Positions 1,813 through 29,697 of a stretch of DNA of 36,859 bases are shown piece by piece. Below the pieces are notes generated by a model. That model worked only from the letters and a program-made list of their open reading frames with translations, searched no databases and had not been told where the DNA came from. The position numbers and the translations under genes are program-made. The stretch lies in assembly GCA_004431415.1 (NCBI GenBank), contig QPMI01000438.1, positions 1 through 36,859 on the forward strand, in the 5' to 3' direction. Numbering within the stretch: the stretch's first letter is position 1; every line of letters starts with the position of its first letter. The stretch comes from Cyanophora paradoxa CCMP329 (taxonomy: Eukaryota; Plantae; Glaucophyta).

Positions 1813-1893
1813 CTGCTTGTTGTAATTAGAATACGCAAGTAACATGCACTAGAAGCTTCTAGGTCTAACTATAATCAGCGGGCTTCGGCGGGA

Positions 1894-4800
1894 TCACTGA
1901 TCTACTTTGCTGCTAGCCTTTGCCCTTTTGTTTGCCGCTAGCGCTGCGGCGTCGGCCGCGGCCTCTGCCGCGGCCTCTGCGCGGCCTCTGCCGCGGCCTC
2001 TGCCGCGGCTCTGCCGGTTGATTCTTCGCTGGACAATTCGGTCGCAGCATCACGAGCCAGCTCACGCTTCTCTGAGACCGAAGCATGCTCGCGCCCTCCT
2101 CGCCTTGCTCGCCGCCTCCTCGCCTTGCTCGCCGCCTCCTCGCCTTGCTCGCCGCCTCCTCGCCTTGCTCGCCGCCCTCCTCGCTTGCTCGCCGCCCTCC
2201 ACGCCCTCCAGCATTGGACCTTTAAAAAAAGGTAATGTTTTCAAGCCCGATAAAGATGCGAATGCGAATATGAACGCCCACCTTTCTTATCGGCTTTTTC
2301 CGTTCTCCTCCTCTTGAGCTCCCTATCATCTTCATCTGCGGAATAGCATCGTTCAGTTGTAGCGCCGCGATTAGCGGAGCTAAATAAGAAGATGAACCGG
2401 CAGAATCCGGAGCTGCCGTGATAGTGAGCATTTGACTATCAGGTCCGTTCAAATTTTGGCAGGGCAAGGACCTGATTTGGAAATCGAGCTCGGGCCGGCC
2501 ACGGGGGCAGGAACCTGCGAAGACTTCTTGACCCATTCGTCCAGTTCCTTCCGGTCGAAAAAACGTCTTTTGAATGTGTCTGTCCTGATGAGCGAAAAAT
2601 CTGGTTAAAGCCTCCGAATTGGAGTTCAGCGAAGAGCTCACCAAGAGCTTGAAGTTGATCCTCGAAGTATTTGGGTTCGAGGAAATAAGCAGGGCGGTCT
2701 TCCGAGCTGAACTTCGCATCTTGCTTCGGAAGGAGATCATCAGCTTCTTTGAGCTCGTCGAGAGTCCAGAAGCCCACTGCAATAAAAGAATCATATAATT
2801 GTTAGCAAAAGTTGGAAACCTCTAGAGAATTGCATGTTATCAAGCAAACGAACCGTGAAACGAAGGCTGATTGCGTTCAACGAGTCCACAACCTCGCGTT
2901 CTGCACGAGAGAGCTTTCGCCAAGCATGCTCTTGCGGACGAGTGGATGGTATCCGACCGCGCCGAATATCACATCAATGTTTGGCTGGTCTGGAACACCG
3001 AATTGGGTTTCTGGTTCGTCGTCTTCTTCCGCATCCTCGCGACCGATGGCAAGCTGCGGCACGAGCACTCGTGTGATGCGGCCGAACAAGGCGCTTGATA
3101 TTGCCCATCTGCGCGTGCGTTATTTTAGATTGTCGAAGTGATTGAAGGCATGCGTAATGGCGCACTTGCCGAAGGCATGAAGAATCTCTGTAGCGAGAGG
3201 CCAATCAAAGAATCGATTTTCTTTGAACATGTTCATCTGCACGATTTCACCGGATTGCATGAACTTTGTAGAGCTGTAGGTCCATGGCCAGTCAAGAAAA
3301 ACAAAGCCTGGCAAGGACGCAAATGTGCGTACACCATCCTTATGCACAGGCGATACATAAGCCGAGCCTTCGACATCTTCTCGCCACGCTTCGCGTGGCG
3401 GGTGTGGATAACCGTAATCTGCGTCTCGGCATTTTCATCCCTGTAGCGGTGTCACCGGACGCAACAGGACATGTTAAGTAGAGAAGGCGCACAGCGCGTT
3501 GTGGACAACAAGGGCCTGCGGACACGTCTGGAAAATTTCTTTGGCAAGGCCCATGCAATGCTCACACTCCTCGAACGAAACCATGTGTTCTTTGTGCTTG
3601 TGTTTGGAAATCTGCTTGATCTTCGTGTTCGCCTCTCGCATATCATAAGCGGCGAAGCCATAGTACATGGCGTTGTAGTCCTCTTCCGTTACCTGGTCGT
3701 CCACCCGAGGCCCTCTGCTTTCTCTGTAGCCGGGCGCGAATCGTAGGACATAAAGAAAGCAGGCTGGAGATTCATTAAGAATAAATAAAGAAGTCTTCAA
3801 GCCTACCAAGAATGCAAAACGCACCAAGCCTTTCAAAGACGAAATAATTTCATTCTTCTCTTTCATGTTGTAAAACTTGAGCATCTGCTTCTTGTGGATG
3901 TCCTTCACCTCGTCGCTCGACAACTCCGGTCCAGAAACTGAAGCGATGGAGGTTACAAGGAATCCCAAACACAAAACAGGACTCACAACAAAAAAGTGTT
4001 GTTCCTGGCACAGAAGCCTTCAGCGCCTTCATCACAGGCCGAACCTTCGTGTTGGTCTGGGTGAACCACAAGTCAGATCACAGGCCGTAAAGCATGAAGG
4101 ATATAAAGATTGAGACCTCGTACACAGGTGCCAAAGAAACGCCGATTACTGATGAAGCGGTGAACCCGTGTTTCTCAGTGGACACGGCGCACATCGCGTC
4201 GACAATATGATCAGGTTCAGCAGCGTTCTGACGGAGCACACCGAGTGGCTCCGAAGTGAACCCCTTCAAAATATGCTCTCCATTGGAACGCGTTGCAAGA
4301 TGTCCTCTAGAAGAGCATGGAAAACCTGTTGGCACATACGAGATCTCAAGGGACGGATTCTGAGAAAGACAAACATGAAGAAACGCACAGAGCCATTCCT
4401 CGCCTGGGAGAAAATCCACTGTAGGACCCGCGGATCGAGGCAATTTGTAAAGCTTGCGAAATTCCGAGTCAGACTTCGCCGGTGGTCCACAGTTCTGGGT
4501 TCGGCTGTTTCCTGTGTCAAGACAGGGTGAGCAGTACGTCGACTTGCACCTGCCACGATGAATAAGTAGCGAATACGATCGCTTAAACTGCAGAAGCGCT
4601 TAACTTCTGCTTACCACTTATTGCCACAGCTGACAACTCGCTGACCTTCGGGCACCAAGAGCCCACACGCCGAACAAACGGCGTTCTCCGCAATGTTTTC
4701 AATGAAACTCGAAATCGGTTGTGCAGCCGAGACAGCAACAGCATCCGGGGCTGTGAATCGAGGTTTGAAACGGAATTCTTTTAACTATCTCTGACAAACG

Positions 4801-6050
4801 TGCACCTGCAATTTCACGACGTCCGTACTTCTCAAAATGTGTTTCATACTCTTGCAGTTCCTCTTCATCCCATGGTTCTGGCTTCTTGGCTGAGAAACAG
4901 TCAGAAATGCAAATCCCACATTGCCACTGCAAAACTGTCACGGAAAACGCACGTTCGAAGGGAGCTTTCCCGGCTCTTGAGGGTGTGGGCGAGGAAGATG
5001 GCGAGCGATGGGGCGTAGAAGAGCCGCCGGGCACGGCGAGGTGGAGCCGGCCCCGCCGCCAGTGGCGCCTTCTCCTTCTCCTTCTTTGCCCTTTTCTCCC
5101 TCGCCATCGCAACCAAACGCTTCGAACACGTCAAAAGCTCGTGCGTCGATTTACGAAGCTGAGCCAGCGCCTCCCTGCATTTGCTGATTTCCGCATCGGT
5201 GGTAGCGACTTCGAGACGCTGTTTCAAGTCTACGATGCTCGAAAAAGAGTGTGAGAAACGAGCCATTAAAAAATCGCCTTGCAACTCCCGAAAGAGTTGG
5301 TCTGCTTCTTGATTCATCCGATTTGCCTCGGGTTGGGCTGGTCCTGCCGCTGGTGCTTGGGCTGGTGGTTGGTCTCCGCCAGGTTTGTCGAAATCCGCTT
5401 GCGGCGCAGATGGGGATACGGAGGCACTCGCATCAGCGCTAGCTGCACCCCGGATGCTCCGGCCGCGGGTCCCTCCAACGGTAATATTCCAGCAGAAAGG
5501 TTTTCGGCTCCACCTGAAGACAAATCAGCCAAGACCAGCGCGATCCAAGACGATCCCACCTAGTGGTGGCCGGGTACTGTCTGAAAGTTGGGCTGTTTCT
5601 GCGAGAGAATTGACATCCTGTTGTATTTCGGGATCATGATCAGCATAGTAGTCGGGCAGAAAATGGAATGAATCTCCTAATTCGGTTATCTACTTGAAGT
5701 TCGTTAGGAACAGAGGTGCCAAGGCCTGACGGCCGAAAGAGCCGCGTCCGCAGTTGGTTCGCACCCGCGATTGCAATTGCTTGGGATCCTCGCCCGCGGC
5801 CGGATCCGGATCCATAGCAGCCGCGCGCGCCAACCGGGCTGCCGTGCCGCAACAAGTTCAGATTCTGTAGCTTGTCGTACTCGAAATGGAACGCGCCGTC
5901 AAAGTTCCAACCGGCGCGACCGTGCACGTTGAGAAGCGAGTTCAAAGCCACCGAAGATGAACTGCGCCAGAAGACAAAGCGTTTCATGCTCAGGTTATCC
6001 GAAAACATCACGCATAGGCGGAATACTCCGGGATCCGCACCAATCAAGAA
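1894..6050 (-). CDS. Large multi-exon protein with an ADD/PHD-like Cys8 zinc finger, a coiled coil and an acidic/Ala-rich repeat C-terminus
   Basis: Splicing GT-AG introns 4614-4550 and 4388-4326 gives in-frame VCSACGLLVPEGQRVVSCGNKWCKSTYCSPCL...EEWLCFPC. Further exons lie in ORFs 5640-6047, 4901-5317, 3474-3986, 3120-3347, 2877-3089 and 2439-2777. Putative stop TGA at 1896-1894 after ...AAAEAAADAAALAANKRAKASSKVDQ. The 5' end is uncertain. Confidence 0.6.
1955..2205 (-). repeat. Coding minisatellites: 12-bp unit (gccgcggcctct, AEAA) and 20/21-bp unit (ctcctcgccttgctcgccgc[c], EGGEQGE)
   Basis: Direct tandem copies at about 1955-2015 and 2095-2200; several units are 1 nt short of a codon multiple. 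Confidence 0.85.
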
Positions 6051-7430
6051 GATTAGCTATTCCGATTGACCACACTGATTGAACAAGTAGATGTAAAGCC
6101 GCCCGAATGACCACACTGAGCAAGTTGCGGCCCGGTTGCAAGTTGCGGCCGGTTGCCTTTTGGGGGGGTACCCGCACGCAGCCCGGGGCGACGGGCCGGC
6201 GGCGTGCCGGTACGGTGCGGACTCTACGCTGTGCGGACTCTATACTAGTTGGACCTTGCAGGCAACAGGAGAGCTAGTTGCAGTGCGGGCAAACATGCAT
6301 ATGCAGGCCGCCTCTCCCAAGCTAGTTACATCGCAGCTATAGCTAGCAGGAGAAGTTTTTCGGCCTACCGTCCATGTGACTAAGCGGTACACGAGGAGCA
6401 GCACTCCGGATTCCTCAGCCAGCCTTCAAACGACCATTTGCAGTTCGCGCGTACGAGCGGCCAGAAGCAGCCCCGGGCGCTTCGAAGAAAGGAAGAGGCC
6501 GGCTAGCTACCTTGCAGTCGCTCCCCGCCGCGACGATGCTCTCGCCAGCCGTACGTCGGCGACAAAAACCAATATGCATGCAAAAACGAGGTGCGCTGAG
6601 AAACCTACACTAGCTGCGGCTCAGAACGAACTCAACGATCTCTTTAAATCACATGCCGCTAACGTTGCGCTTGTCTGCGGCACCCCTCGAGCAGGTTTGG
6701 GTCACATCGCCAGAACCGTGCACTCGCAGCCACCGACAGCGATCTGCCTACGTATACGTATACGTGCGCACCGATCAGCAAAGCCAGAAACAAGCGGTCG
6801 TCGAGCGCACCAGGATAACAAGGCGCCGACGTGCCATAGCGGTCATTCTGTCCATTCCGGCGACGCTGTTTAGTCAGCTTATGTCGACACTGAAGTGGTT
6901 TTATACCGTAAAAGCGCACCGAGACCTGCCGCGGGCGCCGTGGTGGTGAGCTGGCTGCAGTCTTTCTCTTACCTGATCTGGTGGTGCAAAGTTAGGGCGC
7001 GAAGCGCAGTGCCTGGGCCGGGAGGCAGCACGAATAGTTTATATCTAACATTGAGAAAGCGAAGTACGCACGTCTGGGCGGCGGGGCTCAGTTTCCCGGC
7101 GGCGGTCCGGCCCGCTGCGCGGCGGCGAGGCCGGGCGCGCCACCCGCTGCGCGGCGGCGGGTCAGGTCTTGCACGGGGATAGTGCACATGCATACCAAAG
7201 TGGTGGCGTACCGTTAGAGGCACCTGGCGTCCGAGAAGAGCGAGGTGCGACGGAAACGCAATGGGGGAAAACTGATCTGGGAACGCGCGACCGCTTCCTG
7301 TGAGCGGAACAATCTATCATTCAACATTCATTCAGCTCGGACCCGCGGCCGGATCCCTCGAGGACTCAGTCAGGGCCAGCTCGTTGCAAGAGGCGAAAAC
7401 GAGGACGAAACGCCAGAGGCAGCTTGCAAG

Positions 7431-7478
7431 TTGCAAGGCGGTCTTGCAAGGCGGTCTTGCGCATGCAAGGCGGTCTTG
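7431..7478 (+). repeat. 13-bp tandem repeat (ttgcaaggcggtc) x3, upstream of the F-box-like gene
   Basis: Three copies; the third carries a 6-nt insertion (tgc becomes tgc-gca-tgc, 7458-7466). Confidence 0.8.
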
Positions 7479-7556
7479 TAAGCCGGCCTAGCGCTTTGGC
7501 TATAGCTAGGTTTTGACCCCGCTTGCACTGTACCCCAGCTGTTTTTTGGGGGCCAA

Positions 7557-10486
7557 ATGGCCGGGCCGCTTGTTGACCATGCCGGCGCCAGCGCTAGCTG
7601 TAGCGGGCCTGCGCCACGATCCGCATTGGCTGATGGCCGCGTGCGATCTTTATCAGACTTCCCTGAAGACCTCTTGATCAAGCTCACAACAGAAGTCGGC
7701 ATCGTCGACGCCTTAGGAAATGGCTCGATGAAGCTAAGCCGGTTCATGAAGCAAATCGTTGAAAAGCAAGCTTGGCCGGAGCTCCAGCTTACGTCGTGCT
7801 CTGCGTTCGGGCATGGACGATATGTGCAAGATGCCGTCTGGGCTCAAGTCTTGGACCGCTTGATTGCCAGCGCTCAAGATGGCCGCCTCAGTGTTCGGGA
7901 CTTGCAATTGAAGCGCAACGATTTCCCCGAAATGGCACCGTCTTCATTGCAAGGGTGCGCGCGGCGTCGACCTCGGGCAAACATGAAATTAAAATCGCAA
8001 TCGCAAAATCGCATGACCAAAGAGTTGCGTTCGAAAACAGATTCCTTCGCTACTTCGAATTTTATCTCAACAGCGTGCGGGTTTACAGGAAGTCCGAATC
8101 AGCCACCCTGACTTCGCTCGCAATCTGGCAGCGGGATCCCGCTGTAGGTAAGCCTCAGGCGCAATTCTCTAAAACGCAGATGTATGCAACTGAAGATTTG
8201 CACCTCAGGATTCCCTGGGAACTGAAGCGTAATGCGGTGGTACCGCCGAAGAAGTATCCAGCCCTACGCTTCAGTCCTGACGAATCTGAAACAATCGAAC
8301 TCGATCCCGACCCTGAACGTACTAACAGCAAAGATGACATTGACATTCCCTCTGACGACGTCGGCTCGCTTGGATCGTCCGCCGAAAACGAGCTCTGTGA
8401 CTGGATAACAAGCGCGTTTCACTGGATCCCCCGGACTTCACTCCGACGACTTTATGAGCGCGATGGCGAAGACTGCTTTATTCCACACCGTGCACTAGCG
8501 AGGCTGCTACTATTCGTACGGCACTGTATCCGCGGCATAGGTATATACAAGATATCCTGGCCAGTATCACGAGTTCGTCCTCAACACTACAACTGCTTTC
8601 AGTTGATCTGAACATTGATGTGATACGAAATAATTTCTTTGGAATGCCGCCACGTGCGTGTACGGGGCATTTCAGTTTTTGAAATATTGACCCTGGAAGC
8701 AGTCGGTACACGCCGGAAAAAGTTGTTCGAGGCACTCACCCGACTCGTTAAAATCGAACATCTCGATATATCTGGCAGTTTCGTCGTTGACGCCGAGTTC
8801 ATCACCGAGCTACACCAGAGTATCGAGCCATCTGCTTGCATTTGGCGGTCGCTTGGACTGTCAGTCGGAATTCTATCGAAGCCAGTTGACGGGCACGAGA
8901 ACAGCCGTCAGTTTAGAGCAGTGGAGTTCAATGCTTACAGAGAAACTGCGGTCCGGGCCGCTGAAACTATCGCTCGTCGGTTCCCCGCGCTGGAAGTGCG
9001 TGCTCGCTTCATTGCGTTGTTGTTTTCTGCACCTGTGGCTTATCATACTCGAGCAGGAGCTGAGATTTCTCACACCGCAAGCGTTCAAGGGAGTCCAGAA
9101 TATGGAGCAATACATAGCTCTCCCCAGCCGGGACTTACAGCACTATTTACCTTGAAAACGCTGAAGGCCCTTCAGATCGGTCCGCACATATCCCTTATAA
9201 TTACCGAGTTGTCCCTCCAGATTGGACGGAGCGTTAGATATCATATACTGACATTGTAGCGTTAGATATCTTTTCTCTAATAGACGCGAACCACGGGAGA
9301 GAGAGTTTCAGAACAAGCCCGATCAAGTACCTCTCCGTTATCGAATGTGACCGGCGGCAAGCGAGGGACCAACATAGCTCAGAAGCTTTGCGGGCGCTGA
9401 TAGCGGTCAATTTTGCGTCACTCGTGGCTTACTGTCCTGTGCGTTCGAATTCATGTGTTTAACTGCCAACGGGCGCACATGCAGTTGACGACTGTGCCTC
9501 CCCTAGGATTCTCTCAGACATCTCACCTTGATGAGCAAAACATGGTTTTCTATGAACATCATGACGTCTGTTGCCCTGATTACCAATTTAACGTCTCTCG
9601 TGCTCAACATCGACATGACGCATTCCGCGACTCCGCGCCCTAAAGGCTATCGCTGTTCTGGGTGCTTCCACCAACACGTAAACAACATGGACGATGAGCA
9701 GTTGTATCGAGAACGGGATCACAATTCGGCAGCGGCTAATCTGGAATCCCTGCAAATGATCCGAGCCTTGACCTACCTCGAGCTGAGGCTCTCAGGATGC
9801 AAGCATCGCCTTGTCAGCTTTTGGAAGCTCTCGTCCTCAAGAAAGTGTTCAATGCACTGAAAGCTGTTAAAACTTTCACTCTCAGCATACATCACACACG
9901 CATCGCATACGGACTTCCAAAATTGCAGAATGTCGACGTGTCAACGCCAACGTACGAGATCGGAACTGCACTTCAAGAGTTTGATAAAGCCGACGAATTA
10001 GTTGCACAGCAAGCAGCAGCGGTCATTTCGACGTATTCGGATAGAATCACATCATATCGTCGTGTTGGTAGTCTTCCAGTCGTTGAGGAGTGCAAGGCTA
10101 TTCAAAAGGCCAGCGCGTCGTTGGTGCAAGTTGGCCTATTTTTCAGCCCATCACGTCGAATGCGGAATTCGTACACAAGCGATTCTGCAGTATTGGCTGA
10201 TCTCGAACGTACTCTCGAACCGCTTCGCGGGCCCCTCCCCCTCCTCCATTGTGCCGCGCCCGCCGCGACATTTTTTTCAGGGCATCCCTCTTCCAGAATC
10301 CCAGCTATGCTGCGGCATGTCTTGTTGATTTCTTCTCCGGGATTTGCCTCAAACAGAACGATTTGTAGGACCTTCCGGCCCCTGGCGAGTGCATATTACG
10401 AAGCATCGACATCCAATGCTCACAACAAACGAGCACGAGAGACCGAGCTCTCGCTACGTCAACGACGCTCCTCGTTCTTTGTGTAA
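7557..10486 (+). CDS. F-box-like / LRR (FBXL-like) protein, multi-exon, with apparent frameshifts
   Basis: N-terminal LSDFPEDLLIKL (F-box-like start). LRR-like segments LVKIEHLDISGS, LKTLKALQIG, LTSLVLNI, LTYLELRLSGC, LPKLQNVDV. C-terminal block RRVGSLPV...TLEPLRGPLP aligns by eye with KRVGLVPV...ALQPLRPSLP of the gene at 25237-28012. Confidence 0.55.
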
Positions 10487-10652
10487 TCATCATGCTAAAT
10501 TTTAATTCAGGCTTTGGCTCCTGACGTGAAAAAAGCCTAGGAATGCTACTGAATATCTATATATAGCTATACGCAATCTTAACCGTGCGCGGCCGTGGGC
10601 CGGGCTAGTCACGCACTGTACTAGTCACGCACAGGAAGGGCACATGCTCGAC

Positions 10653-10830
10653 TTACGGGATCACCGAATCCCTCGCGACGTAGCAACGATGCAACCGGGC
10701 CGGGGTTGCACCTGTCATTTCAGTGACGCGTAGCGGGGAAGGCCGGCAATCCCCGAGAACGCGCACGTCGACAAAGCTGCCCTCGTTCTCGAGCCGCGGT
10801 AAACGTCGCGGCGTGTATAGAGCAATCAGC
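10653..10830 (-). pseudogene. Isolated fragment paralogous to the C-terminal part of the gene at 22119-25046
   Basis: ALYTPR...FVDVRVLGDCRPSPLRVT versus AFIPR...VLEVQVLGDSRPSPQGIT. DNA gcggggaaggccggcaatccccgagaac (about 10732) versus gcggggaaggccgagagtccccgagaac (about 22418). Confidence 0.5.
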
Positions 10831-11569
10831 GCTGTCGGCTCCGCTGTCGGCTGTCGGCTCCGGTGGATCTCTCCAGCGTCTTCAGGCCTTAACTTCGTCT
10901 TCGCCATGCTGCGCGCCGCGCAACGACTTGGACGAAACCGTGGCCGAGGCCGTGGCGCGGCTTTGCCGTCGGCGCCAGCTTCGCCGCCGCTGCTTCGCCG
11001 CAGCTTCGCCGCTTCGCGAGCTTCGCCGCTTCGGCCCATGAGGGGTACGAGGGGCTTCGGCCCGCGAGTCATGAAACGTGGCCGCGAAGTGGATGAAGCA
11101 CTGGCGAAAGTCGAACGGGCGGAGACGGAACTGGTCAAAGCGCGGGCTGAGCTCGCCGAAGTGCTGCTCGCGCTCGAGCGGCCGGCTGCGGCCACCACAC
11201 CGGAGACGGCGACCGCAAGCAGGGACATGGAGCTTGTCGAACTCATCGACATCACCGATTCCGAGTCCGATGAGCCAGGCCCTTCGACTCCGGCGGCCTC
11301 CTACTTGCATGTGAGCGCGTGCTTATCGGCGGGTGCCTGTCCCCCTTCACCCCTCTGCAGGAGATCCGGGCCAGGCGAAAACCGCTGTTGCACCGCCGGC
11401 GACACCGGCAGCGGTCATCCCTCCGGAGTCACTTGGGCGCCTGACAACCTTGACCCCTCTGCAGGAGATTCACGTCCTGAAGCAGGTGCTGGAACCGTGT
11501 CCGTCACCCGTCGCCAACGTCGCCTTCGCAAGGGGCGCCTGCCGTGCGCCCCGCCCCTTCCCCCCCCGG

Positions 11570-11930
11570 CGCGAGCCCGGAGCGCCGGCGATCAAGCGCG
11601 AGGCCGGAGCGCCGGCGATCAAGCGCGAGCACGAGGCATGCGCAGCGCCTCCGGCAGCGCCGCAGGCCGAGCCCGGAGCGCCGGCGATCAAGCGCGAGGC
11701 CGGAGCGCCGGCGATCAATTGCAAGCGTGAGCGCAAGGCAGCGCCTCCGGCAGCGCCGCAGGCCGCCGTGGTCAAGCGGGGCGCGCAGCGGAGGCGCCGC
11801 CGGCCGCGGCGACCGCGGCGGAGCGGCCGCCGCACTCCGCCCCGTCGGCCCGCCCCGTCTTCGTCAAGCGCGAGCCGGAGGCGCCGCACGCGGCCCGCCC
11901 CGTCTTCGTCAAGCGCGAGCCGGAGGCGCC
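11570..11930 (+). repeat. Coding repeats PAIKRE x4 and PVFVKRE x2
   Basis: ccggagcgccggcgatcaagcgcgag recurs at about 11577, 11604, 11673 and 11700; cggcccgccccgtcttcgtcaagcgcgagccggaggcgccgc occurs twice (about 11846-11932). Confidence 0.8.
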
Positions 11931-12579
11931 GCCCGCGCGCCGCGCCCCGCCCGGGGCACGCATCCTCCTCCCCTCCTCCGGCCCCCGCCCCCGCCGCGGC
12001 TGCCGCGCCGGCGGCGGCAGCGACAACGGTCATCGCGCCCGACGCACTCGTGCGCGCCTCTTCCTCCTCCGCCCCTCCCCGGCGCCGGCTGACCGCTCCA
12101 GGCGCTCCCGCAGGAGGTGCGCGTGCTGGAGCAGGTGCTCGAGCCGCGGCCCTCGCCCGTCGCCGCCCTCGCCTTCTCATGGGGCGCCTGCCGTGCGCCC
12201 CCCGTCCACCGGCCCCCGCGCGCCTCACGCCGCGCAGCGCTCTCGGGCCCCGCCGTGAGCGACTCCATCGTGAGCCTACACTGTTGTGGCAAGGCGCAGA
12301 AGTACCACTGGCGCCGGCCGGCGCCGGAGGAGGCCCCCGTGCAGGAGCCGCCGCCGCCAGGCCCCCTCGACATCGTCGGCATGGTCCCCATCGTGCGCCC
12401 CCGGGCCCTCTCCCCCCTTGCGCTGCGCCGCCTCACGGGCCCCGCAGGAGATCGACCTCGACATGGACCCCATCCTCGCCTGCCCCCGCGGGCCCATGGT
12501 CCCCGTGCCCCAGCCCGCCGCCCCAGCCCCCGGTGCGGCGGCTGCCGGCGCCGCCCCGGGCAGAGCGGCCTCGGTGGAG

Positions 12580-12586
12580 GTACCAG
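12580..12586 (+). repeat. Left target-site duplication GTACCAG
   Basis: Identical 7-mer immediately outside both TIRs (12580-12586 and 19497-19503). Confidence 0.93.
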
Positions 12587-12619
12587 TACACCGGCACTTT
12601 TCCGCCAAGCACCGAAATC
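12587..12619 (+). repeat. Left terminal inverted repeat (33 bp)
   Basis: tacaccggcacttttccgccaagcaccgaaatc is the exact reverse complement of 19464-19496. Confidence 0.95.
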
Positions 12620-12665
12620 GGTGTTTTCGGTACATTTCGTTACCGAATTTTTCCGACTTTTACCC

Positions 12666-12829
12666 AACCGCGCCGGCTGGTTACCCAATTTTTCCGAATT
12701 GTACTCAACCGCGCCGGCTGGTTACCCAATGGTTCCGAATTTCACTCAACCGCGCCGACTGGTTACCGAATGGTTCCGAATTTCACTCAACCGCGCCGGC
12801 TGGTTACCCAATGTTTCCGACTTTTACCG
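12666..12829 (+). repeat. Left subterminal array, 4 x 41 bp
   Basis: aaccgcgccggctggttacccaat(t/g)..ttccgaatt..actc units start at 12666, 12707, 12748 and 12789. Confidence 0.92.
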
Positions 12830-13649
12830 AGGTCCCGGCTTGGAGCTCAGCTAGCCGGCTAGCATACCTAAGAGGCGGTCACCGGGTAGAGATGCATGGC
12901 GCGCGCTGGCGCTCAGAGCGGGAGCGGCAGAGCCGCGCTCTCCCGTCGACGTTTCTCCCGTCGCTAGTAGCCTAGTAGTAGCCGTTGCTGCATGCTCTAG
13001 CTAGTAGCAGCATGCAGCCGTAAACGAGCTGGCACGCCTCGCGAAGGTGCGTCCCGAAGGAAGGCCCAGAGACCGCACGGTGCGTCTTTCCTTGCTTGTG
13101 GGCTTTTGCTCTGCCTCGTAGGTCACGAAGCTTCGTCGTTCTCTCGCTCGCTCGGCAGCTCTCCGTGGCGAAGGCATGCGGGGCGGCCGCGGACGGCCGC
13201 GGTGCGTGCACGTGGTTCCCGTGCCTGGAGGGCTTCTGCTCTCCCTCGCGGCTCACGCAGGTCACAGGGACGGTTCGAAGATGGCAGATGCGCGGCTCGT
13301 TGGCCGTTGCGCTCGCGTTCGCGCGGATGCTGTTCAGGTCGCCGTCGGATCGGAGCTGTCTCACATGTTTCGGTGTGTAGCGCGGCCGTCGCAACCTCCC
13401 GATCGGCGGTCGCCTCGGGTGCGCCGGCGCCTCGGGCCTGCCAAGCACAGCATTGGAACAGCCACGCGCTCGCGCATGGCTGACGAGGCACAGGCCGCGA
13501 CGCGGCCGCCTCGGATCGTCGCAGTTTGGGAGTGCTTCCACTCCACAGCCTGGGTGAGCCCCTGACGCGATTTGAGCCGGCTGCGCGCGTGCGCGTCGCT
13601 GACAGGGCGCGCAGGTCATACGAAATGCTGGACGCGCCGCTTGCGGGGC

Positions 13650-14560
13650 AGGGCGGCGGCGCGGCGGGCGGCGGCGCGGCTCGCCGCACGGGGCGGAGGC
13701 TCGGCGGGCGGCGACGCGTCTCGCGGGGCGGGGCGGAGGCGCGGCGGGCGGCCTCTCCGCTCGCAGGGCCGCGTCGGCGCGGCTCGCGCGGCGGGGCGGA
13801 GGCGGGGCGGGCGGCAGCTCCGCTCGCGGGCGGCGGCGCGGCTCGTGGGGCGGGGCGGAGGCGCGGCGGGCGGCCTCTCCGCTCGCAGGGCCGCGTCGGC
13901 GCCGCTCGCGCGGCGGGGCGGAGGCGCGGCGGGCTGCAGCTCGGCTCGCGGGCGGCGGCGCGGCTCGTGGGGCGGGGCGGAGGCGCGGCGGGCGGCCTCT
14001 CCGCTCGCAGGGCCGCGTCGGCGCCGCTCGCGCGGCGGGGCGGAGGCGGGGCGGGCGGCAGCTCCGCTCGCGGGCGGCGGCGCGGCTCGTGGGGCGGGGC
14101 GGAGGCGCGGCGGGCGGCGGCGCTGCTCGCCGGGCGGGGCGGAGGCGCGGCGGGATGCGGGGCGGCTCGCGAGGCGCGGCAGACGGCCCCGCGGCTCGCC
14201 AGGACGGGGCGGGAGCGCGGCGGGCGGCGGCGCGGCTCGGCGGGCTGGGCGGAGACACGCCCGGCGGCGACGGAGCTCGCCGGGCGGGTCTGAGGCGCGG
14301 CGGTCGGCGGCGCGGCTCGCCGCACGGGGCGGAGGCGCGGCGGGTGGCGGCGCTGCTCGCCGGGCGGGGCGGAGGCGCGGCGGGCGGCGGCGCGGCTCGC
14401 CGCACGGGGCGGAGGCGCGGCTAGAAGCGGCATCGGGTGCGGCGGGCGGCGGCGCCGCTTCCGGGGTGGGGCGGAGGCGCAGCGGAGGCTCGGCGGGCGG
14501 CTGCGCCGCTAGCAGGGCGGGGCGGGGCGGAGGGGAGGGGCGGGGCGGGGCGGGGAGGGG
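13650..14560 (+). repeat. Left GC-rich modular arm (core ggcggggcggaggcgcggcgggcggc)
   Basis: Many copies of the core alternating with a few spacer types; blocks are near-exact reverse complements of 17270-18425. Confidence 0.9.
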
Positions 14561-14637
14561 CAGGTAGAGAATCGTGTGCGAACCTGCTGATGTCAGGAAG
14601 AGACTCATGTGCAAAATATTGTAACCTCGCCGGGCAG

Positions 14638-17132
14638 AGCCTAGTCGGCGAATATCACCAAGGAAAACATCTTATCTGACAAGTTACATCCGGGCAAGGA
14701 GATGCTCCCGGGGGTTCTTGAGGGTGCTGGATTTGATTCTGAGGTCGTCGTAGGCCCGGCACTAGCTCGTAGCCCTCCGTGCATTATTTGGAGGGCGAGT
14801 CGCCACAATTTTTGGCGGGCTTTTTGGGGCCTTCCCGCGCAGCAGGGCGTGCGAGTAGAAGCCCGGCAGCCGATAGGCAGGTCAAGGCCCTATCTAATAT
14901 GGTACTGAATGACTCACGTCGGTCGGGAGTCGAGTTAGGGAGGCACGGGTGGACTGGGAATCGGCTCTCAAAATTGATCTCGGGATAAATTCAATTAGGG
15001 AGTTGTTCTCACTCGCCGCTGCGCCCGGACGTCCTGAGCTTATAGTTAAACACTCTTCATATACATGTGGGGGCACTGATATTGTCTGCGGGGGCTCATA
15101 GGTGCCACTTACTCGGTATCTGTTTAATGGCATGTAGAGACTCATGATCATGTGCAAAAACTTGCAAGCTCGCCGCGCCGAGCTTAAAAGCACGAATGAG
15201 CTTGTAAGAACGTCAGATTCGGATTCCCCGCCCTCAAAATGGGCGGGGTGGAAAGTTTGGGTAGTCACGGCCCGGGACGACGCGGCGGAGTCGGGTCGAG
15301 TGTGCTACTTGAGTCAGCTAACCTGCCACCAAGAAGCCTAGTCGGCGAATATCACCAAGGAAAACATCTTATCTGACAAGTTACATCCGGGCAAGGAGAT
15401 GCTCCCGGGGGTTCTTGAGGGTGCTGGATTTGATTCTGAGGTCGTCGTAGGCCCGGCACTAGCTCGTAGCCCTCCGTGCATTATTTGGAGGGCGAGTCGC
15501 CACAATTTTTGGCGGGCTTTTTGGGGCCTTCCCGCGCGGCAGGGCGTGCGAGTAGAAGCCCGGCAGCCGATAGGCAGGTCGAGGCCCTATCTAATATGGT
15601 ACTGAATGACTCACGTCGGTCGGGAAATGAGTTAGGGAGGCACGGGTGGACTGGGAATCGGCTCTCAAAATTGATCTCGGGATAAATTCAATTAGGGAGT
15701 TGTTCTCACTCGCCGCTGCGCCCGGACGTCCTGAGCTTATAGTTAAACACTCTTCATATACATGTGGGCGCACTGATATTGTCTGCGGGGGCTCATAGGT
15801 GCCACTTACTCAGTATTTGTTTAATGGCATGTAGAGACTCATGATGCAAAAACTTGCAAGCTCGCCGCGCCGAGCTTAAAAGCACGAATGAGCTTGTAAG
15901 AACGTCAGATTCGGATTCCCCGCCCTCAAAATGGGCGGGGTGGAAAGTTTGGGTAGTCACGGCCCGGGACGACGCGGCGGAGTCGGGTCGAGTGTGCTAC
16001 TTGAGTCAGCTAACCTGCCACCAAGAAGCCTAGTCGGCGAATATCACCAAGGAAAACATCTTATCTGACAAGTTACATCCGGGCAAGGAGATGCTCCCGG
16101 GGGTTCTTGAGGGTGCTGGATTTGATTCTGAGGTCTTCGTAGGCCCGGCACTAGCTCGTAGCCCTCCGTGCATTATTTTGGAGGGCGAGTCGCCACAATT
16201 TTTGGCGGGCTTTTTGGGGCCTTCCCGCGCGGCAGGGCGTGCGAGTAGAAGCCCGGCAGCCGATAGGCAGGTCGAGGCCCTATCTAATATGGTACTGAAT
16301 GACTCACGTCGGTCGGGAAATGAGTTAGGGAGGCACGGGTGGACTGGGAATCGGCTCTCAAAATTGATCTCGGGATAAATTCAATTAGGGAGTTGTTCTC
16401 ACTCGCCGCTGCGCCCGGACGTCCTGAGCTTATAGTTAAACACTCTTCATATACATGTGGGGGCACTGATATTGTCTGCGGGGTCTCATAGGTGCCACTT
16501 ACTCAGTATCTGTTTAATGGCATGTAGAGACTCATGATCATGTGCAAAAACTTGCAAGCTCGCCGCGCCGAGCTTAAAAGCACGAATGAGCTTGTAAGAA
16601 CGTCAGATTCGGATTCCCCGCCCTCAAAATGGGCGGGGTGGAAAGTTTGGGTAGTCACGGCCCGGGACGACGCGGCGGAGTCGGGTCGAGTGTGCTACTT
16701 GAGTCAGCTAACCTGCCACCAAGAAGCCTAGTCGGCGAATATCACCAAGGAAAACATCTTATCTGACAAGTTACATCCGGGCAAGGAGATGCTCCCGGGG
16801 GTTCTTGAGGGTGCTGGATTTGATTCTGAGGTCGTCGTAGGCCCGGCACTAGCTCGTAGCCCTCCGTGCATTATTTGGAGGGCGAGTCGCCACAATTTTT
16901 GGCGGGCTTTTTGGGGCCTTCCCGCGCGGCAGGGCGTGCGAGTAGAAGCCCGGCAGCCGATAGGCAGGTCGAGGCCCTATCTAATATGGTACTGAATGAC
17001 TCACGTCGGTCGGGAAATGAGTTAGGGAGGCACGGGTACCGGTGGACTGGGAATCGGCTCTCAAAATTGATCTCGGGATAAATTCAATAGGGAGTTGTTC
17101 TCACTCGCCGCTGCGCCCGGGCTACCTGAGCT
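14638..17132 (+). repeat. Tandem array, about 697-bp unit x 3.6, near-identical copies
   Basis: Unit starts (agcctagtcggcgaatatcacc) at 14638, 15335, 16027 and 16725 (periods 697, 692, 698); the fourth copy is truncated near 17132. Confidence 0.95.
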
Positions 17133-17269
17133 CTGGCGGAAATGTTCCATCTTAATTATATTCCAACTATATACTATATATACTATATACTATATTCCGT
17201 CAGCTGCGCCTCCCGCTGCCCGCGGCTGAGGCCCGCCGAGCATCCGCCAGCCCCGCAAGCGCCGTCCAC

Positions 17270-18425
17270 CGCCCGGCGCGCCTCCGCCCCGCCCCACGAG
17301 CCGCGCCGCCGCCCGCGAGCGGAGCTGCCACCCGCCCCGCCTCCGCCCCGCCGCGCGAGCTGCGCCGACGCGGCCCTGCGAGCGGAGAGGCCGCCCGCCG
17401 CGCCTCCGCCCCGCCCCACGAGCCGCGCCGCCGCCCGCGAGCCGAGCTGCAGCCCGCCGCGCCTCCGCCCCGCCGCGCAGCGGCCCTGCGAGTGGAGAGG
17501 CCGCCCGCCACGCCTCCGCCCCGCCCCACGAGCCGCGCCGCCGCCCGCGAGCGGAGCTGCCGCCCGCCCCGCCTCCGCCCCGCCGCGCGAGCCGCGCCGA
17601 CGCGGCCCTGCGAGCGGAGAGGCCGCCCGCCGCGCCTCCGCCCCGCCCCGCGAGACGCGTCGCCGCCCGCCGAGCCTCAGACACGCCCGGCGGCGATGCA
17701 GACCCGCCCAGCGAGCTCCGTCGCCGCCGGGCGTGTCTCCACCCAGCCCGCCGAGCCGCGCCGCCGCCCGCCGCGATCCCGCCCCGTCCCGGCGAGCCGC
17801 GGGGTCGTCTGCCGCGCCTCCGCCGCGCCTCGCGAGCCGCGCCGCCGCCCGCCGCGCCTCCGCCCCGCCCGGCGAGCAGCGCCACCGCCCGCCGCGCCTC
17901 CGCCCCGCCCGGCGAGCCGCGCCGCCGCCCGCCGCGCCTCAGACCCGCCCGGCGAGCTCCGTCGCCGCCGGGCGTGTCTCCGCCCAGCCCGCCGAGCCGC
18001 GCCGCCGCCCGCCGCGATCCCGCCCGTCCCGGCGAGCCGCGGGGCCGTCTGCTGCGCCTCCGCCGCGCCTCGCGAGCCGCCCGCCGCCCGCCGCGCCTCC
18101 GCCCCGCCCGGCGAGCAGCGCCGCCACCCGCCGCGCCTCCGCCCCGTGCGGCGAGCCGCGCCGCCGCCCGCCGCGCCTCAGACCCGCCCGGCGAGCTCCG
18201 TCGCCGCCGGGCGTGTCTCCGCCCAGCCCGCCGAGCCGCGCCGCCGCCCGCCGCGATCCCGCCCCGTCCCGGCGAGCCGCGGGGCCGTCTGCCGCGCCTC
18301 GCGAGCCGCCCCGCATCCCGCCGCGCCTCCGCCCCGCCCGGCGAGCAGCGCCGCCGCCCGCCGCGCCTCCGCCCCGCCCGGCGAGCAGCGCCGCCGCCCG
18401 CCGCGCCTCTGCCCCGTGCGGCGAA
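17270..18425 (-). repeat. Right GC-rich modular arm, inverted relative to the left arm
   Basis: Core gccgcccgccgcgcctccgccccgcc; for example 17511-17678 is the reverse complement of about 13696-13865. Confidence 0.9.
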
Positions 18426-19073
18426 CCGCGGCGCCGCCCACGGTGCCTCCTACCCGCCGCGCCGCAGCACGCCCCACACCCACCACCGCCGCCGAATCGG
18501 AGGCGGCGTGCGGTCGATCCAGCAGCCGGCACTGCAATTGCAAACCGTGAGCACTGCGAACGCGTACCGCCGGCCCCGAAGCGCGGCTCGGGCGGCGCAC
18601 CTGAGGGCGATGCGCGCTCTCGGAAGGCTGGATCGGTCCAAGCGCGGCGGCGAACACGCTGAAGCTGCGATCGCGTCGTCTACATGTGCATAAGCATGAC
18701 CACGTCGAATCTCCTCTAATCCGAGAGCTCTGCGTGGGCGGCGGGCCGCCCTCAGCTACATGTACAGGGTTCGGAGCGGATCAGCCTAGAAGCGGGCGCG
18801 GCGGACCGTCTAGAGCTGCACGCGCTTCGCTCGTATCACGCCCACGAACTGCTGGAGTCGAAACTCCGCCTTGGGGGCGCGAGCGCACTGCGGCAGCGGT
18901 CGACGACCCGCGCCTTGATATCCCGTCGACTCGGCCGCACGCGTCGGGCCTCCCGAACCGTTCCTGTGCACCTGCGTGAGCCACGAGGAAGAGCAGGAGC
19001 CTTCTAAGCACGGGAAAGACGCACCGACCGCCCGGAGAAGGTCGCACGAAGGTCGATGCCCGACGATGCTGCT

Positions 19074-19130
19074 GGTCGTCTAGATCTTCGCCCTGCATGC
19101 AGGTCGTCTAGATCTTCGCCCTGCATGCAG
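19074..19130 (+). repeat. Perfect 28-bp tandem duplication
   Basis: ggtcgtctagatcttcgccctgcatgca at 19074 and 19102. Confidence 0.9.
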
Positions 19131-19271
19131 CGCTGCAGCTGGCGATGCGCGCCGCCGCGCCGGCCCGCGGCCTGCAGCTCGCTGCAGATGGAGCCAGTCG
19201 AGCGCCTCCTAGGTATGCTAGCCGAGCTGGAGCTGCGTCGGCTTGCTGGCTAGTAGAACCGAATTTTACTC

Positions 19272-19435
19272 GACCGCGCCGACTGGTTACCGAATTTTTC
19301 CGAATTGTACTAAACCGCGCCGGCTGGTTACCGAATTTTTCCGAATTGTACTGAACCGCGCCGGCTGGCTACCCAATGTTTCCGAATTTTACTCAACCGC
19401 GCCGACTGGTTACCCAATGTTTCCGAATTTTACCC
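19272..19435 (+). repeat. Right subterminal array, 4 x 41 bp, in the same orientation as the left array
   Basis: Units start at 19272, 19313, 19354 and 19395 with the same plus-strand consensus as 12666-12829. Confidence 0.92.
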
Positions 19436-19463
19436 AATGTTTCCGATTTTTACCGAAATCGGT

Positions 19464-19496
19464 GATTTCGGTGCTTGGCGGAAAAGTGCCGGTGTA
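19464..19496 (-). repeat. Right terminal inverted repeat (33 bp)
   Basis: gatttcggtgcttggcggaaaagtgccggtgta, followed directly by GTACCAG. Confidence 0.95.
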
Positions 19497-19503
19497 GTAC
19501 CAG
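19497..19503 (+). repeat. Right target-site duplication GTACCAG
   Basis: Matches 12580-12586. Confidence 0.93.
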
Positions 19504-21429
19504 CAGCACCAGCGGCGGCAGCGCCGGCGGCCCCCACAGCGGCGCCGGCATCGCCGCCGCCCGCATTGCAGCCCCTCGGCGGGTCCTTCTCGCAGCCTTC
19601 GGCAGCACTGGCGGTGCCGGCGGCACCGGCACTGATGTTCACGCACGCGCTGGAGCTGCCGACGGAGGCGCTGCAGCGCGTCGGGCCGCAGCGCCCTGCG
19701 CACGCCCTCCCCGCCCTCGCCCTCTCCCGCGTGCGCCCTCCCACCCGCCCGCCGGCCGCCAGACTCCGCACTGACGCCGGCGCAGAACGACGCGTACATG
19801 ATCGCCTCCCTTGGCACCGCGGGGTACCTCTTCAGGTGCCCCGCACGTCCAGCCGCCGCGCTCCTGGGGCCCTGACGCGGGCGCTCCTGGCGAGGGGCAG
19901 CGTGTACGGGCGGCACGCGCGCTGGGAGCGGTTCGGGCTGATGCGGAGCGACGCGGAGGGGCCTGGGGCGAACCCCCAGTGGCCCACCGCCATCGCCTTC
20001 AGCCTCCACGACAACAACGTCGTTCTCGTCGGCACACAGGTGCCCGCCCGCCCGCTCCTTGCCCTCCAGCTACTTGCTTCTCTCAGATCGCCCCGCGTAG
20101 ACGGGTCGCGTGCGGATCTCAAACCTCAAGAGCCGGCGACCTGTGGTGGAGTGCGCCGCCGGCCTCGGGCCCAGCGGCGAGACGGTGCCCGTGGCAGCGG
20201 TGCTGCCAACGGTCTGCCGGGCGCCCTCGTGGGCGTGGTGGGTGAACCCGGGCCTCCCGGCGCCCCGCCCCGCCCCGCTGGACGCCTCCACCCCCGACCC
20301 CACCGCCGAGGGTCGCTGGATCTACTGCACCTTTGCTGCCTCTGGGACGTGCGTGATTCGACCTGTGCCCCCCTTCCCGCCGACCCGTCCTCGCCTCCAG
20401 CGGGCGGCGCAGAAGCCTGTTGGCACTCTTCATGCCCTCCGCCGAGTTGCTAAACGTGCAGCCGCCTGAGGGCGCCGGCCCCACACCGGACTGCAGTCCG
20501 CCCCTTCCACCTTTCCTATCTCAGCGCGGCGTCTTCTGACCTAGCACGCAGCACTGGCGCAGCTGGACCTCGCGGGGACCGCCCCGCATGGATCCACCGC
20601 CCGCGTCGTCCCCGGCGGTGCGCGCCTCGCCCACCCGCGCCGCTGAGCAAAGAACCCTCCGGGTGCAGGAGTGCATTTCTTCCTGCAGGGGTTTGACCCG
20701 GCGCGGCGCACACCGCCGGCACCACCGCTGCCGCGGCGCCCCGGGGGCCCGCCGCCTCCCCCGCCACTGCCGTTCGGGCTGCCGCCGGTGGACCTCCCGG
20801 AGGAGGAGACACGGCTGGCACAGCTCGTGGCGGTGACCTTTGAGGACCGCCTTGTGCTCGCCCGCCTGCGCCCGCTCCCCGCTGGCCCCGTCCCCATGGC
20901 CCTCCAGATCGTCCACGCCGCGCCCCTTCCCCGGGGCTACACCCGCTTCGAAGCCTCCGCTCTCTCTGCCGATGCAGGTGCCCTTTTCGTCCTCGCCACC
21001 CGGTCGAGGAAAGGGCAGTCCCTACTCGTCTTCGACCTCTCCCCGGGCCCCGCCAACCTCGCCTGGACTCTGCCGCCGGGCCGCCTCGCCCATCCTGCCT
21101 GCACCCTCAACCTACGTGCCGCCATCCGGCCCCGCCTGCGCACCGCCAGCGACGGCTCCCCCGGGGCGCCTCCCGCACCCGTGGATGCCCACATCGCCAC
21201 CTGCCTAGCTGCCTCACCCAAAAACCCCAGTCTGGTGCAACTTCTCACCGGTACCCGAATCTGCTGGACTGACAGTCCCGCAGGTCGCGGTGGGCACGCG
21301 AGGGGGGGCAACAACCCTTCTCCGCATCCCGGAGCCATTCCTGCGCATGCGGGGGCCGCAGCCCTATCTGTAGGCTTGATTTCGAATTCGAAATTGCACC
21401 TCATGAAGCTCGTGTCTCGTATACGTAGC

Positions 21430-25236: not shown

Positions 25237-28012
25237 ATGAAGCGCCCGCTTTCGCCGGGCGGTGAACATTCTGGCGGTGAACATCAGAGCAAGATTGAAC
25301 GGCCCGGTGAACACCTGCGCTTTTGTGGTCAGCGCGTTTTCATCTTACTAGCACCCTCTGGCAGGGGCCGGAATGTCCAGCACAATGCCCGTTAGCGGAG
25401 CCGACAGCCACCCGCTGGCAGGGGTCGGAATGTCAAGCTCAATGCCCGTGAGCGGCGCCGCCAGCGAGGGAAACGAGAGTCGTACCGGTTCGCGGACGGA
25501 ATCCATGCATGCATTGCTGTCTCGCAAGTAAAGCTGACTGCGCGTGCACGAAGACTCGTCTGCGCATGTGGAGCTCGAGGCCGGAGGCGGCGGCGAGGCT
25601 GCCTATCTTCCCGACGCTCTTATCGTGGAAGCTCTCAAGAACGCTGACTTCGTCGATTTGTGGACGGGTTACGGATTCATAAGGTTTCGCCAGCGTTCGG
25701 CAAGCTGCTCCGAAATCTTGCTATTGGCGAGCTCAATCTATCGTTCGCACTTGAATCTCGCGGGGTCGTGATTGCGATCTGCATACCCTCTATGGCGGCG
25801 AGGAAGTCCGCTGGCTGGCACAACGCGTCACGGAAACGATGCGCGAGCAAGCAATAGCGTCATGGAGTCGGCTTTTGAGGTTTTGCATTCGATGTGCCGC
25901 GGCGTGGGGTTTTCGCACAAGTGTGTTTCGCTTGGAGGGCAGTTTCTACAAGCAAGTCGATCAGGTCTTCGTTACGCTGGTGAAATCTTGCGTTTTCGTT
26001 TTCGTGATTGTGACATTTTTCAATTACGCACATTTTTTGCGACACGGCAGGTTCCCCGCCTGCTCTCCCAACTCGACGGGCTTCGCACGCTCAGGATTGC
26101 TCACCAGGCACCAGACAGCGAATTTATCCGTGCATCTCGCACTGCTCGTCGTTATGCATACATTTTGAAGGTCCTACAAGAATGCCCCAAGACTGTCGAG
26201 CACTTGAGTTTGCTTCTGTCAGTCTCCGACGGTCGCAACGATAAGTCCCTATCCGCATCTTGGCTAGGTACCCTCAGCAAGCGCATATTCGCATTAATAT
26301 TCCAGTGGTTTTCATTGACTGTACATAGATCCGGTACTTTCTTCCGCTTGCGAAGGTCCAGGTTCGTCGGGTTAGATGCATCCACGTCTTATTTATCGTG
26401 TAGCCACGTGCAAATGTGCTCACACATTCGATGCAGAACGAGAAGTATTCAATGGGATTGTCGCGGCCCTTTCTGCCCTTCCAGCCTCATGCATGTGGAC
26501 TTCGGCGAAGGCATGCTCGTAAACAGGCGCATGCTTGAAGAGCTCGCGCCAGCACTTCCAAAGTTGGAATCTCTGGGACTAGACGTCGACGGTCCGATCC
26601 CGACTCTCTTTCTCTCTCTGTCTCTGTCTCTCTCTCTCTCTTCTCACGAGCAGTCGAACATCTTCCGCAGCTGGTCCGCGCTCGAATCAAGATGTCATCA
26701 CGGAATGTGCAGTCGCAATTGCTGAGCGCTTTCCAAAGCTGAAGCATCTTCGATTGTTTGTCAACGCTTCACCTGGTCATCATGCTCAGCTGCCGGCTGC
26801 GTTTGCACGTATTGGAAAAATGAAAGAGCTGAGAAGCGTGCATATAGGTTTGCTCTGTCATCGAAGTATGCACGTATACGTATGCTTCGTCCTCTGAAGA
26901 CTTCATATGCAGATCACACCGCATTTCGTGCCCTGGCGCTGTGCACTAGGTTGCCAGATTTCGATCTCAAGAAGCTTCGCAAGTTTTCGGTTGACCTCAC
27001 CGGGCTACCGCGCCCTTGTCGGATTGCCTGCCCATGGGAGCCATCACTAAGACGGAGGTGTCTTATATTGTTTATTTATCAATTCCGATTGCAAAGTTTA
27101 CATCTCGCTCACATCCGAGTAGGTTCTCCCGGAGCTTGATCGAATTGAGTTATTCAATGCTCCAAATCATTATTCGCTGGTGGACCTTGTGATGACCTGT
27201 CTGGCAGGCAATGAGCTCGGCGAGTCGTCGTCCAGTCAATCGCAAAGCACGAAGCAGAAGCAAAAGCAAAAGCAGAAGCAGCCTGAGTCTTATCCGAGGC
27301 AACTGTCTGTCGCTATATCTATTGACGACTGCGGTGACACTGGCCCGTGCTTCAGTAGCGAGATTGTGGGATCGAGCTCGAGGACGGCCTTCGCTTGCAC
27401 TGACCTTCCCGACGTCAATCAAAGTAGAATCGGCTTCAATCAAGCATCCATGTCGCCAATTCTTGCAAACTTGCGCTCACTTGATCTCTCCGTCACTGGC
27501 TGCGGCGGATACTTGGCGAGTGTGCTCACGCAACTTTCATCCGTCGTTGCGTGGAGCGCGATTCTGCAAGCCGTCAAACTTGAGATCGTCCATCAAATTC
27601 CATTCCATGTTCACAGCAAGGATTCTGTGCTGGCTGAAACATCTCTTGCGCTTCACATGGTGGACCTGCTCATGACAAAGCCCAACGTCTTCACGGCAAT
27701 CAAGCGGGTGGGCCTCGTGCCTGTCGCGTGCGAGAATCAGTCGCTTGCGCGATGCGCGAATCTGGAACGAGTGGATCTCGTGTACAGGGCCGCCCGGAAC
27801 GAGTTGATCGATTTGTGTGTCCTCGCTTCAGCTCTGCAACCTCTCCGTCCATCGCTACCCAACTGAATAGATGGCCTTCGTGCAACATTCGTTTTGTGAA
27901 GGACGCGATTTCGGACCCCATGGCCAAACTCGTAAAAGCTTTGCTTCCAGGTTGGCATATTGCCTTTAGTCATGTTGCAGACGCTCTTGCCACTCGTGCT
28001 CGCTTCTGGTGA
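25237..28012 (+). CDS. F-box-like / LRR protein, multi-exon, with apparent frameshifts
   Basis: ATG at 25237 (MKRPLSP). LPDALIVEALKNADFVDLW is F-box-like. LRR-like LDGLRTLRI, CPKTVEHLSL, LPKLESLGL, LANLRSLDLSVTGC, CANLERVDL. C-terminus paralogous to 7557-10486. Confidence 0.6.
25352..25465 (+). repeat. 57-bp in-frame exonic tandem duplication
   Basis: caccc(t/g)ctggcagggg(c/t)cggaatgtc...cagc at 25352 and 25409. Confidence 0.85.
26603..26645 (+). repeat. (CT)n microsatellite, probably intronic
   Basis: ctctctttctctctctgtctctgtctctctctctctc. Confidence 0.8.
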
Positions 28013-29490: not shown

Positions 29491-29697
29491 GGATACACTT
29501 AATAAGAATTTGCAAGGGCGCCTGCCACCCTGAATCCTTGATTGAGAGCCCCTGATATGTGCACATGCACTGAGAAAATATCTAATTGATTCCACCGCAC
29601 TCCGCGCACCCCCCCCCCCCCCCCTCTTCGCAGCTTCTCATCCCCCATTTGTATGCTCTACCCAACTGGTTCGGTAGCGCGGGAAACGTTAACTGCC

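Follow-up and report, generated by a model that had tools for sequence, protein, structure and literature searches.

IS3EU and GingerRoot are among the least studied DNA transposon groups. They form one lineage, and complete IS3EU families always have TA..TA ends and usually a target site duplication (TSD) of 6 bp (PMC10045372). Fungal IS3EU families carry terminal inverted repeats (TIRs) of more than 30 bp that start with TAYGG (PMC12730594), and the Zymoseptoria element Styx appears to move non-replicatively (PMC10853768), with a TSD of 6 bp in 33 of 36 cases. GingerRoot, known from Selaginella, has TA..TA ends in 72 of 77 intact copies and a 7-bp TSD in five of the 77, measures 3.9–12.9 kb and prefers gene-poor regions (PMC6839031). 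Foldback elements without genes that carry tandem arrays and satellites, or give rise to them, have already been described in other superfamilies (Tetris, PMC4079207; Galileo, PMC4168063), and we found no published description of a foldback architecture on IS3EU/GingerRoot ends, nor any published report of IS3EU/GingerRoot binding sites or of members in glaucophytes.

Herein we analysed a window of 36,859 bp from the glaucophyte Cyanophora paradoxa (contig QPMI01000438.1), which holds an element of 6,910 bp at positions 12587-19496 (Table 1). The available part of the published genome analysis of C. paradoxa names no DNA transposon family and assigns 11.5% of the genome to unknown repeat (PMC6704402), so that the family is probably undescribed, and of a known kind.

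Boundaries of the element and its empty allele

The TIRs of the element begin with TACACC, are perfect over 33 bp and retain 91% complementarity out to 46 bp. When the whole window was scanned for inverted repeats bordered by duplications, this TIR/TSD pair stood far above all other candidates. Given the local composition, a 7-bp flanking match would arise by chance with a probability of ~5e-4, and no extension of GTACCAG fits a longer duplication. The TIR was not found elsewhere in the window even when three mismatches were allowed (expectation from shuffles, 0). The target itself is not palindromic and lies within DNA of 73% GC.

The element splits a predicted exon of a host gene for which we retrieved five Cyanophora paradoxa models from EukProt, located on five contigs (an exon query led to two relatives, and a cluster look-up and homologue search to the set). 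One of them, P0005 (tig00021015), agrees at 105 of 105 residues with the peptide encoded by the joined flanks, in frame and with one GTACCAG; it is an independent empty allele and confirms the 7-bp duplication. P0005 could be discarded as a spliced product of the present locus, as no GT-AG pair yields its peptide and the model lies on another contig. Since an empty allele with a single GTACCAG exists, the insertion is real. The precise bounds of ~6.9 kb, the perfect 33-bp TIR and the GTACCAG duplication proposed in an earlier note are thus confirmed by both the sequence and the empty allele, as is its in-frame reconstruction of the empty site. P0005 also decides against a CACTA/Mirage-like reading with CACC..GGTG ends and TA as a 2-bp duplication, which would place two GTACCAG around a TA in the empty allele. 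A 6-bp TSD plus a single extra, unpaired base at one of the ends yields the identical sequence and is the less simple reading.

Two other models bear on the locus in other ways. The first three codons of P0003 (tig00020661) correspond to 18760-18768, inside the element, and are spliced to 19572, which is why this model probably represents the present locus. In P0002 the target region is modelled as a short intron, so the exonic status of the insertion site rests on gene prediction. Neither Pfam, the Atlas nor the homologue search assigned the host gene to a class.

Table 1 Features of the element and its surroundings, in window coordinates.
Feature	Position	Strand	Remarks
Interrupted host gene	11071..21370	+	~16 exons; present on 5 or more contigs; one predicted exon split by the element
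Left TSD copy	12580..12586	+	GTACCAG; single copy in empty allele P0005
Left TIR	12587..12619	+	Perfect over 33 bp, with TA start; CCG-core word at 12590, 12601 and 12611 (11 and 10 bp apart)
Left subterminal array	12639..12830	+	4.6 copies of 41-bp unit, which has three related words in 10-bp steps and a GC spacer
Diverged inverted block	12848..12933	+	72% to 19149-19235
Inner-left unique segment	12908..13419	.	DNA depth apparently single-copy; perfect contigs of low depth in two probable RNA runs
Two diverged inverted blocks	13078..13292	+	13078-13130 and 13199-13292, both 79-80% to 18940-19031
Left GC-rich minisatellite arm	13634..14563	+	40-bp unit; 122-bp higher-order repeat; 88% GC
Central head-to-tail array	14638..17132	+	Units of 697, 692 and 698 bp plus ~0.6 unit; 98% identical; 54% GC
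AT-rich linker	17133..17196	.	25% GC; separates central array and right arm
Right GC-rich minisatellite arm	17197..18464	-	122-bp and 239-bp higher-order repeats; inverted relative to left arm
Inner-right unique segment	18465..19258	-	Holds inverted-block partners; apparent single-copy depth
Right subterminal array	19259..19458	+	41-bp unit x4.4 plus 20-bp-period extension; direct to left array
Right TIR	19464..19496	-	33 bp, perfect; ends TA
Right TSD copy	19497..19503	+	GTACCAG; directly abuts element end

Interior architecture

Inside the TIRs, most of the layers given in the earlier note were recovered, with its four copies of the 41-bp repeat now counted as 4.6 and 4.4, its diverged inverted blocks at 72–80% identity, its GC-rich arms at 87–88% GC and up to 98% complementarity, and its central array of 3.6 copies as three full units and a partial one. 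Its claim that the layers are mirrored stood for the TIR and the short blocks, in part for the GC arms, and failed for the 41-bp arrays, which are direct repeats of each other (12653-12828 against 19259-19434, 89% on the same strand); these arrays share exact direct matches of 20–24 bp and no inverted ones. The 41-bp unit comprises three related words with the core A/T-C-C/T-C/G-A in 10-bp steps and a GC-rich spacer, and this spacing of one helix turn suggests that the words are candidate sites for a single protein contacting the same side of the helix.

The GC arms (930 and 1,268 bp) share exact inverted matches of 81–168 bp, and outside them the TIR is the sole exact inverted match of at least 30 bp. 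They are homologous and not collinear mirrors: the left arm consists of A then B, the right arm of three B-type blocks outside A. In the 0.8-kb inner unique segments, mirror symmetry is confined to three short blocks, and the mirrored share of the whole element is ~40%. The element is only loosely foldback-like: its GC arms are repetitive and inverted to each other, and what lies between them and the TIRs is direct arrays and DNA that for the most part is not mirrored.

A degenerate fragment of the 697-bp unit lies at 14590-14643. Although a CTAG-TC junction is present, a tandem Helitron could be dismissed for this unit, as no short GC hairpin precedes the junction, the array ends elsewhere and the 6-mer is expected by chance; nor is the unit a dimer of ~348 bp, as it has no internal repeat. 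Searched against phages, it gave no match.

Copy number, age and possible transcription

Most words of the left junction region were found in 16 probable DNA runs; the read comparison covered the left 4.3 kb, and depths were taken from two of these runs. In these two runs, host-flank contigs reached depths of 644–1,139 and 989–1,916, against 71 and 97 for the inner-left unique contig and 71 and 89 for the right unique contig (assigned to the right end by an 89% match), with unrelated single contigs at 63–70 and 90–95. The resulting ratio of host flank to element, 9–21, suggests one element copy in one of ~10–20 near-identical host copies, an estimate only, since depth is not copy number. Depth-bin arithmetic set a bound of about 5–9 near-identical TIR ends, the element's own two included. 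The absence of other TIR-bounded copies, which the earlier note had held to speak against its proposal, is thus close to what the depths indicate (one copy, at most a few identical TIR ends), and the empty allele still shows a real insertion. No contig bridging the junction occurs among the read contigs listed, so that the junction evidence consists of the assembly and the empty allele.

Over ~1,950 bp, a single substitution separates the host copy from the consensus of the reads of its multi-copy family. The insertion is very recent, as it sits in one of many near-identical host copies, and given this single substitution it postdates a very recent host amplification; the recent age previously read from the perfect TIRs thereby gains a stronger footing. 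Taken as a recently inserted, non-autonomous TIR transposon, the element is almost certainly described correctly. Single-base indels relative to the read consensus were also seen, and look like long-read errors.

Two interior modules are found at higher depth. The GC minisatellite is widespread in the genome, with a summed depth of up to ~1,000 times the single-copy level, and the start of the 697-bp unit reaches ~36–68 times single-copy depth in a variant upstream context, so that this unit either occurs elsewhere in the genome or its array has collapsed in the assembly. Within 13351-13532, short pieces correspond in the same order to a relative whose DNA depth is ~20–30 times single copy and whose depth in two probable RNA runs is 240–250.

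These two RNA runs also hold perfect, low-depth contigs over 12908-13419. The host flank at 10400-11550 is far more abundant, yet most of it has no such contigs in them, which argues for weak transcription of this segment rather than DNA carry-over. The host gene itself is apparently redundant and silent. A search of Rfam gave a single chance match (E 0.51) for structured RNA.

Probable superfamily and proposed mechanism

No transposase was detected by Pfam among 122 ORFs, 11 of them from the element interior outside the GC arms, in line with the earlier view of the element as non-autonomous. Its ends fit IS3EU/GingerRoot better than Galileo. The termini are TA..TA and begin TAY, as in Selaginella GingerRoot, fungal IS3EU and Zymoseptoria Styx/REP9, and the TIR, like those of fungal IS3EU and Styx (36–43 bp), is longer than 30 bp, though it falls short of the 100–150 bp of GingerRoot. 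The size falls within the GingerRoot range, and the insertion lies within repetitive DNA. Against this assignment, the TSD of this single insertion has 7 bp instead of the usual six, a minority length (~6% of GingerRoot copies), and bases 3–5 (CAC) depart from the fungal motif TAYGG..CCRTA, of which TAY alone matches; this motif was reported for rust-fungus families and not for the whole group. The element further differs from described IS3EU/GingerRoot copies in having no transposase and in combining foldback-like arms with a central satellite, features that we found in no published description of the group. On balance we lean towards a non-autonomous cut-and-paste DNA transposon with IS3EU/GingerRoot-type ends, a membership drawn from the ends of one copy and held with modest confidence.

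As one insertion cannot give the TSD norm of a family, P/Galileo, hAT, MULE and an unclassified group have to be weighed as alternatives. The earlier note, which called the element a member of an unclassified or new family, had considered P/Galileo and hAT alone; novelty of the family is probable, and IS3EU/GingerRoot fits better than either. P-superfamily termini are CA..TG, unlike the TA..TA ends found here, which weighs against the idea of a Galileo-like foldback moved in trans by a THAP-DDE transposase, with 7-bp TSDs at GTANTAC-like sites and secondary binding in internal tandem repeats. The likeness raised in the earlier note holds for the TSD length, which is the Galileo norm, and in part for the site, as GTACCAG matches GTANTAC at four of six informative positions; only 1.1% of host 7-mers do equally well, which genuinely counts for Galileo, although it is a post hoc comparison of one site. 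Non-autonomous copies of the Drosophila elements Galileo, Newton and Kepler measure up to 9 kb and likewise have long, internally repetitive arms (PMC4168063; PMC2775673). Their arms, however, are collinear mirrors at ~99%, in contrast to the poor mirror symmetry and direct subterminal arrays of our element, and their preference for AT-rich targets (PMC4168063) contrasts with its GC-rich, non-palindromic one. Overall, a Galileo-type origin appears unlikely.

The asymmetric subterminal arrays recall the transposase-binding arrays of Ac/Ds, and a non-autonomous hAT of a 7-bp-TSD lineage with short TIRs could account for them. The usual hAT terminal consensus is (C/T)A(A/G)NG, which TACAC does not match. 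In addition, a TIR of 33 bp is long for the group and 8 bp is its TSD norm, so that 7 bp fits the hAT7-type minority alone. The hAT7 elements of Puccinia do make 7-bp TSDs, as does Kyakuja of Laccaria, but both begin with CA and Kyakuja has no TIRs (PMC12730594); hAT7-1_PGr, the one hAT7 family compared, starts with CAACGG, unlike TACAC. We consider a hAT rather unlikely. Most foldbacks are MULEs, which can seed satellite arrays (Tetris, PMC4079207; Tm1, PMC3169594), and the Mutator-type Tetris, Tm1 and FB resemble the element in being gene-less, with modular tandem-repeat arms and a link to satellites. Their TSDs are of 8–10 bp, mostly 9 (PMC3169594; PMC4079207), against 7 bp without extension here, and their repeats lie inside mirrored TIRs, whereas the large array of our element is central and its terminal arrays direct; a MULE is accordingly very improbable. 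Hardly less so is an unclassified DDE transposase group with TA..TA ends and a fixed 7-bp stagger. No known group fits every feature, and the repeats of this genome are poorly curated, with the unclassified share given above (PMC6704402), but each feature falls within the published range of IS3EU/GingerRoot, and neither a second insertion nor an enzyme speaks for such a group.

Under the favoured IS3EU/GingerRoot assignment, an rve-type (integrase, DDE) transposase encoded elsewhere in the genome would act in trans. It may bind the CCG-core word, repeated at intervals of one helix turn within the TIR and within the 41-bp arrays, pair both ends and cut at the terminal TA; the ends would be joined to target strands staggered by 7 nt, and host gap repair would produce the TSD. 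The direct orientation of the 41-bp arrays would make the two ends non-equivalent, as each would present its binding words in the direction opposite to the other. Probably no more than the outer ~250 bp of each end is required, which would leave a passive interior free to grow by slippage, exchange between arms and tandem amplification. The genome-wide GC minisatellite may have expanded in both arms, with inter-arm exchange keeping them alike, as suggested by exact inverted matches of up to 168 bp, in contrast to outer blocks that have drifted to 72–80%; the 697-bp unit would have been tandemly amplified recently in the centre.

A wider reading, which we regard as doubtful, is that C. paradoxa harbors one lineage of transposons, either IS3EU-like or unclassified, in which the stagger is fixed at 7 bp, the two ends are not equivalent and gene-less members share interior modules (GC minisatellite arms, transcribed unique blocks and a central satellite) with foldbacks of other end types. 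If true, a third superfamily would join Mutator and P as an origin of foldback architecture, and families would have exchanged modules. The importance of the locus is limited by what seems to be one copy in a redundant, apparently silent gene. It nevertheless adds a further case of a non-autonomous element with satellite DNA, and the young insertion, empty allele, phased motif and non-equivalent ends together make a usable substrate for work on transposase recognition and the fixity of the stagger.

No autonomous partner with these ends was seen; since depth permits only ~2–9 near-identical TIR ends, such a partner would have to be scarce or differ in its ends. A 20-mer of the TIR had no match in viral contigs and four in metagenomes, each unlike the TIR past 20–21 bases and hence attributed to chance. 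Three of these four lie in one bacterial gene, which by eye resembles carbon-monoxide dehydrogenase.

Host segment around the element

The segment that surrounds the element, a non-autonomous TIR DNA transposon, is itself young and multi-copy. Its depth in read contigs is ~10-20 times that of single-copy DNA, and a single read contig extends, without a break, 4.2 kb leftward from 10747. In composition the segment combines 50% GC genes with one 73% GC gene of roughly 16 exons (the host gene that the element interrupts), which is present on at least five contigs; no RNA contigs of this gene were seen in two runs. We looked in the window for a TIR pair bounding the segment and found none.

Relative to the window, most or all of the read depth carries single-base insertions at five positions (see table), which are probably long-read assembly errors and which shift the frame of the host gene in the assembly. 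The last large exon of this gene has weak, beta-propeller-like Atlas matches (0.91-0.92, with recognition below threshold), and no relatives of it beyond C. paradoxa were found among 1.84 billion representatives.

Features in and around the element
Feature	Position	Strand
Spliced gene or genes	~200-5430	-
15-bp inverted repeat	2967-8625	
Host segment	6500-12586, 19504-21400	
50% GC genes	7557-10486, 25772-28000, 29653-31543	
Single-base insertions in reads	10473, 11367, 11777, 11939, 11952	
Stretch with a matching relative	13351-13532	
40-bp GC minisatellite	13634-14563, 17197-18464	
Start of 697-bp unit	14638-14700	
Last large host-gene exon	20689-21237	+
Tandem exon-intron units	28607-29155	

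Repeats within the element

The 40-bp GC minisatellite of the arms is a genome-wide repeat, since its summed depth reaches up to ~1,000 times single copy and RNA contigs contain it with many different flanks. Short pieces of the stretch at 13351-13532 match, in the same order, a relative that has a depth ~20-30 times that of single-copy DNA, is strongly present in the RNA runs and likewise leads into GC minisatellite; this relative is possibly another family with arm modules in common. The start of the 697-bp unit, the repeat of the central array, has ~36-68 times single-copy depth, as against only 3.6 units assembled here, and the sequence upstream of this start also exists as a variant.

Short inverted repeat and flanking genes

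A perfect 15-bp inverted repeat, starting TAT and bearing a 4-bp direct flank, CGAA, was also observed. It may be due to chance, because the window holds two further perfect 15-bp inverted pairs and a read contig spans position 8625 without a break.

In the minus-strand spliced gene or genes, a Cys-rich stretch and the motifs HxD and CxC..CxH by eye resemble PHD, JmjC and SWIM domains, a reading unsupported by Pfam, Atlas and a homologue search. Several 50% GC genes appear, on visual inspection of their sequence, to have an F-box-like motif at the start and leucine-rich repeats after it; Pfam gave no matches on their scanned ORFs. A flanking gene includes three diverged tandem exon-intron units of ~230 bp each, which are 72-86% identical.
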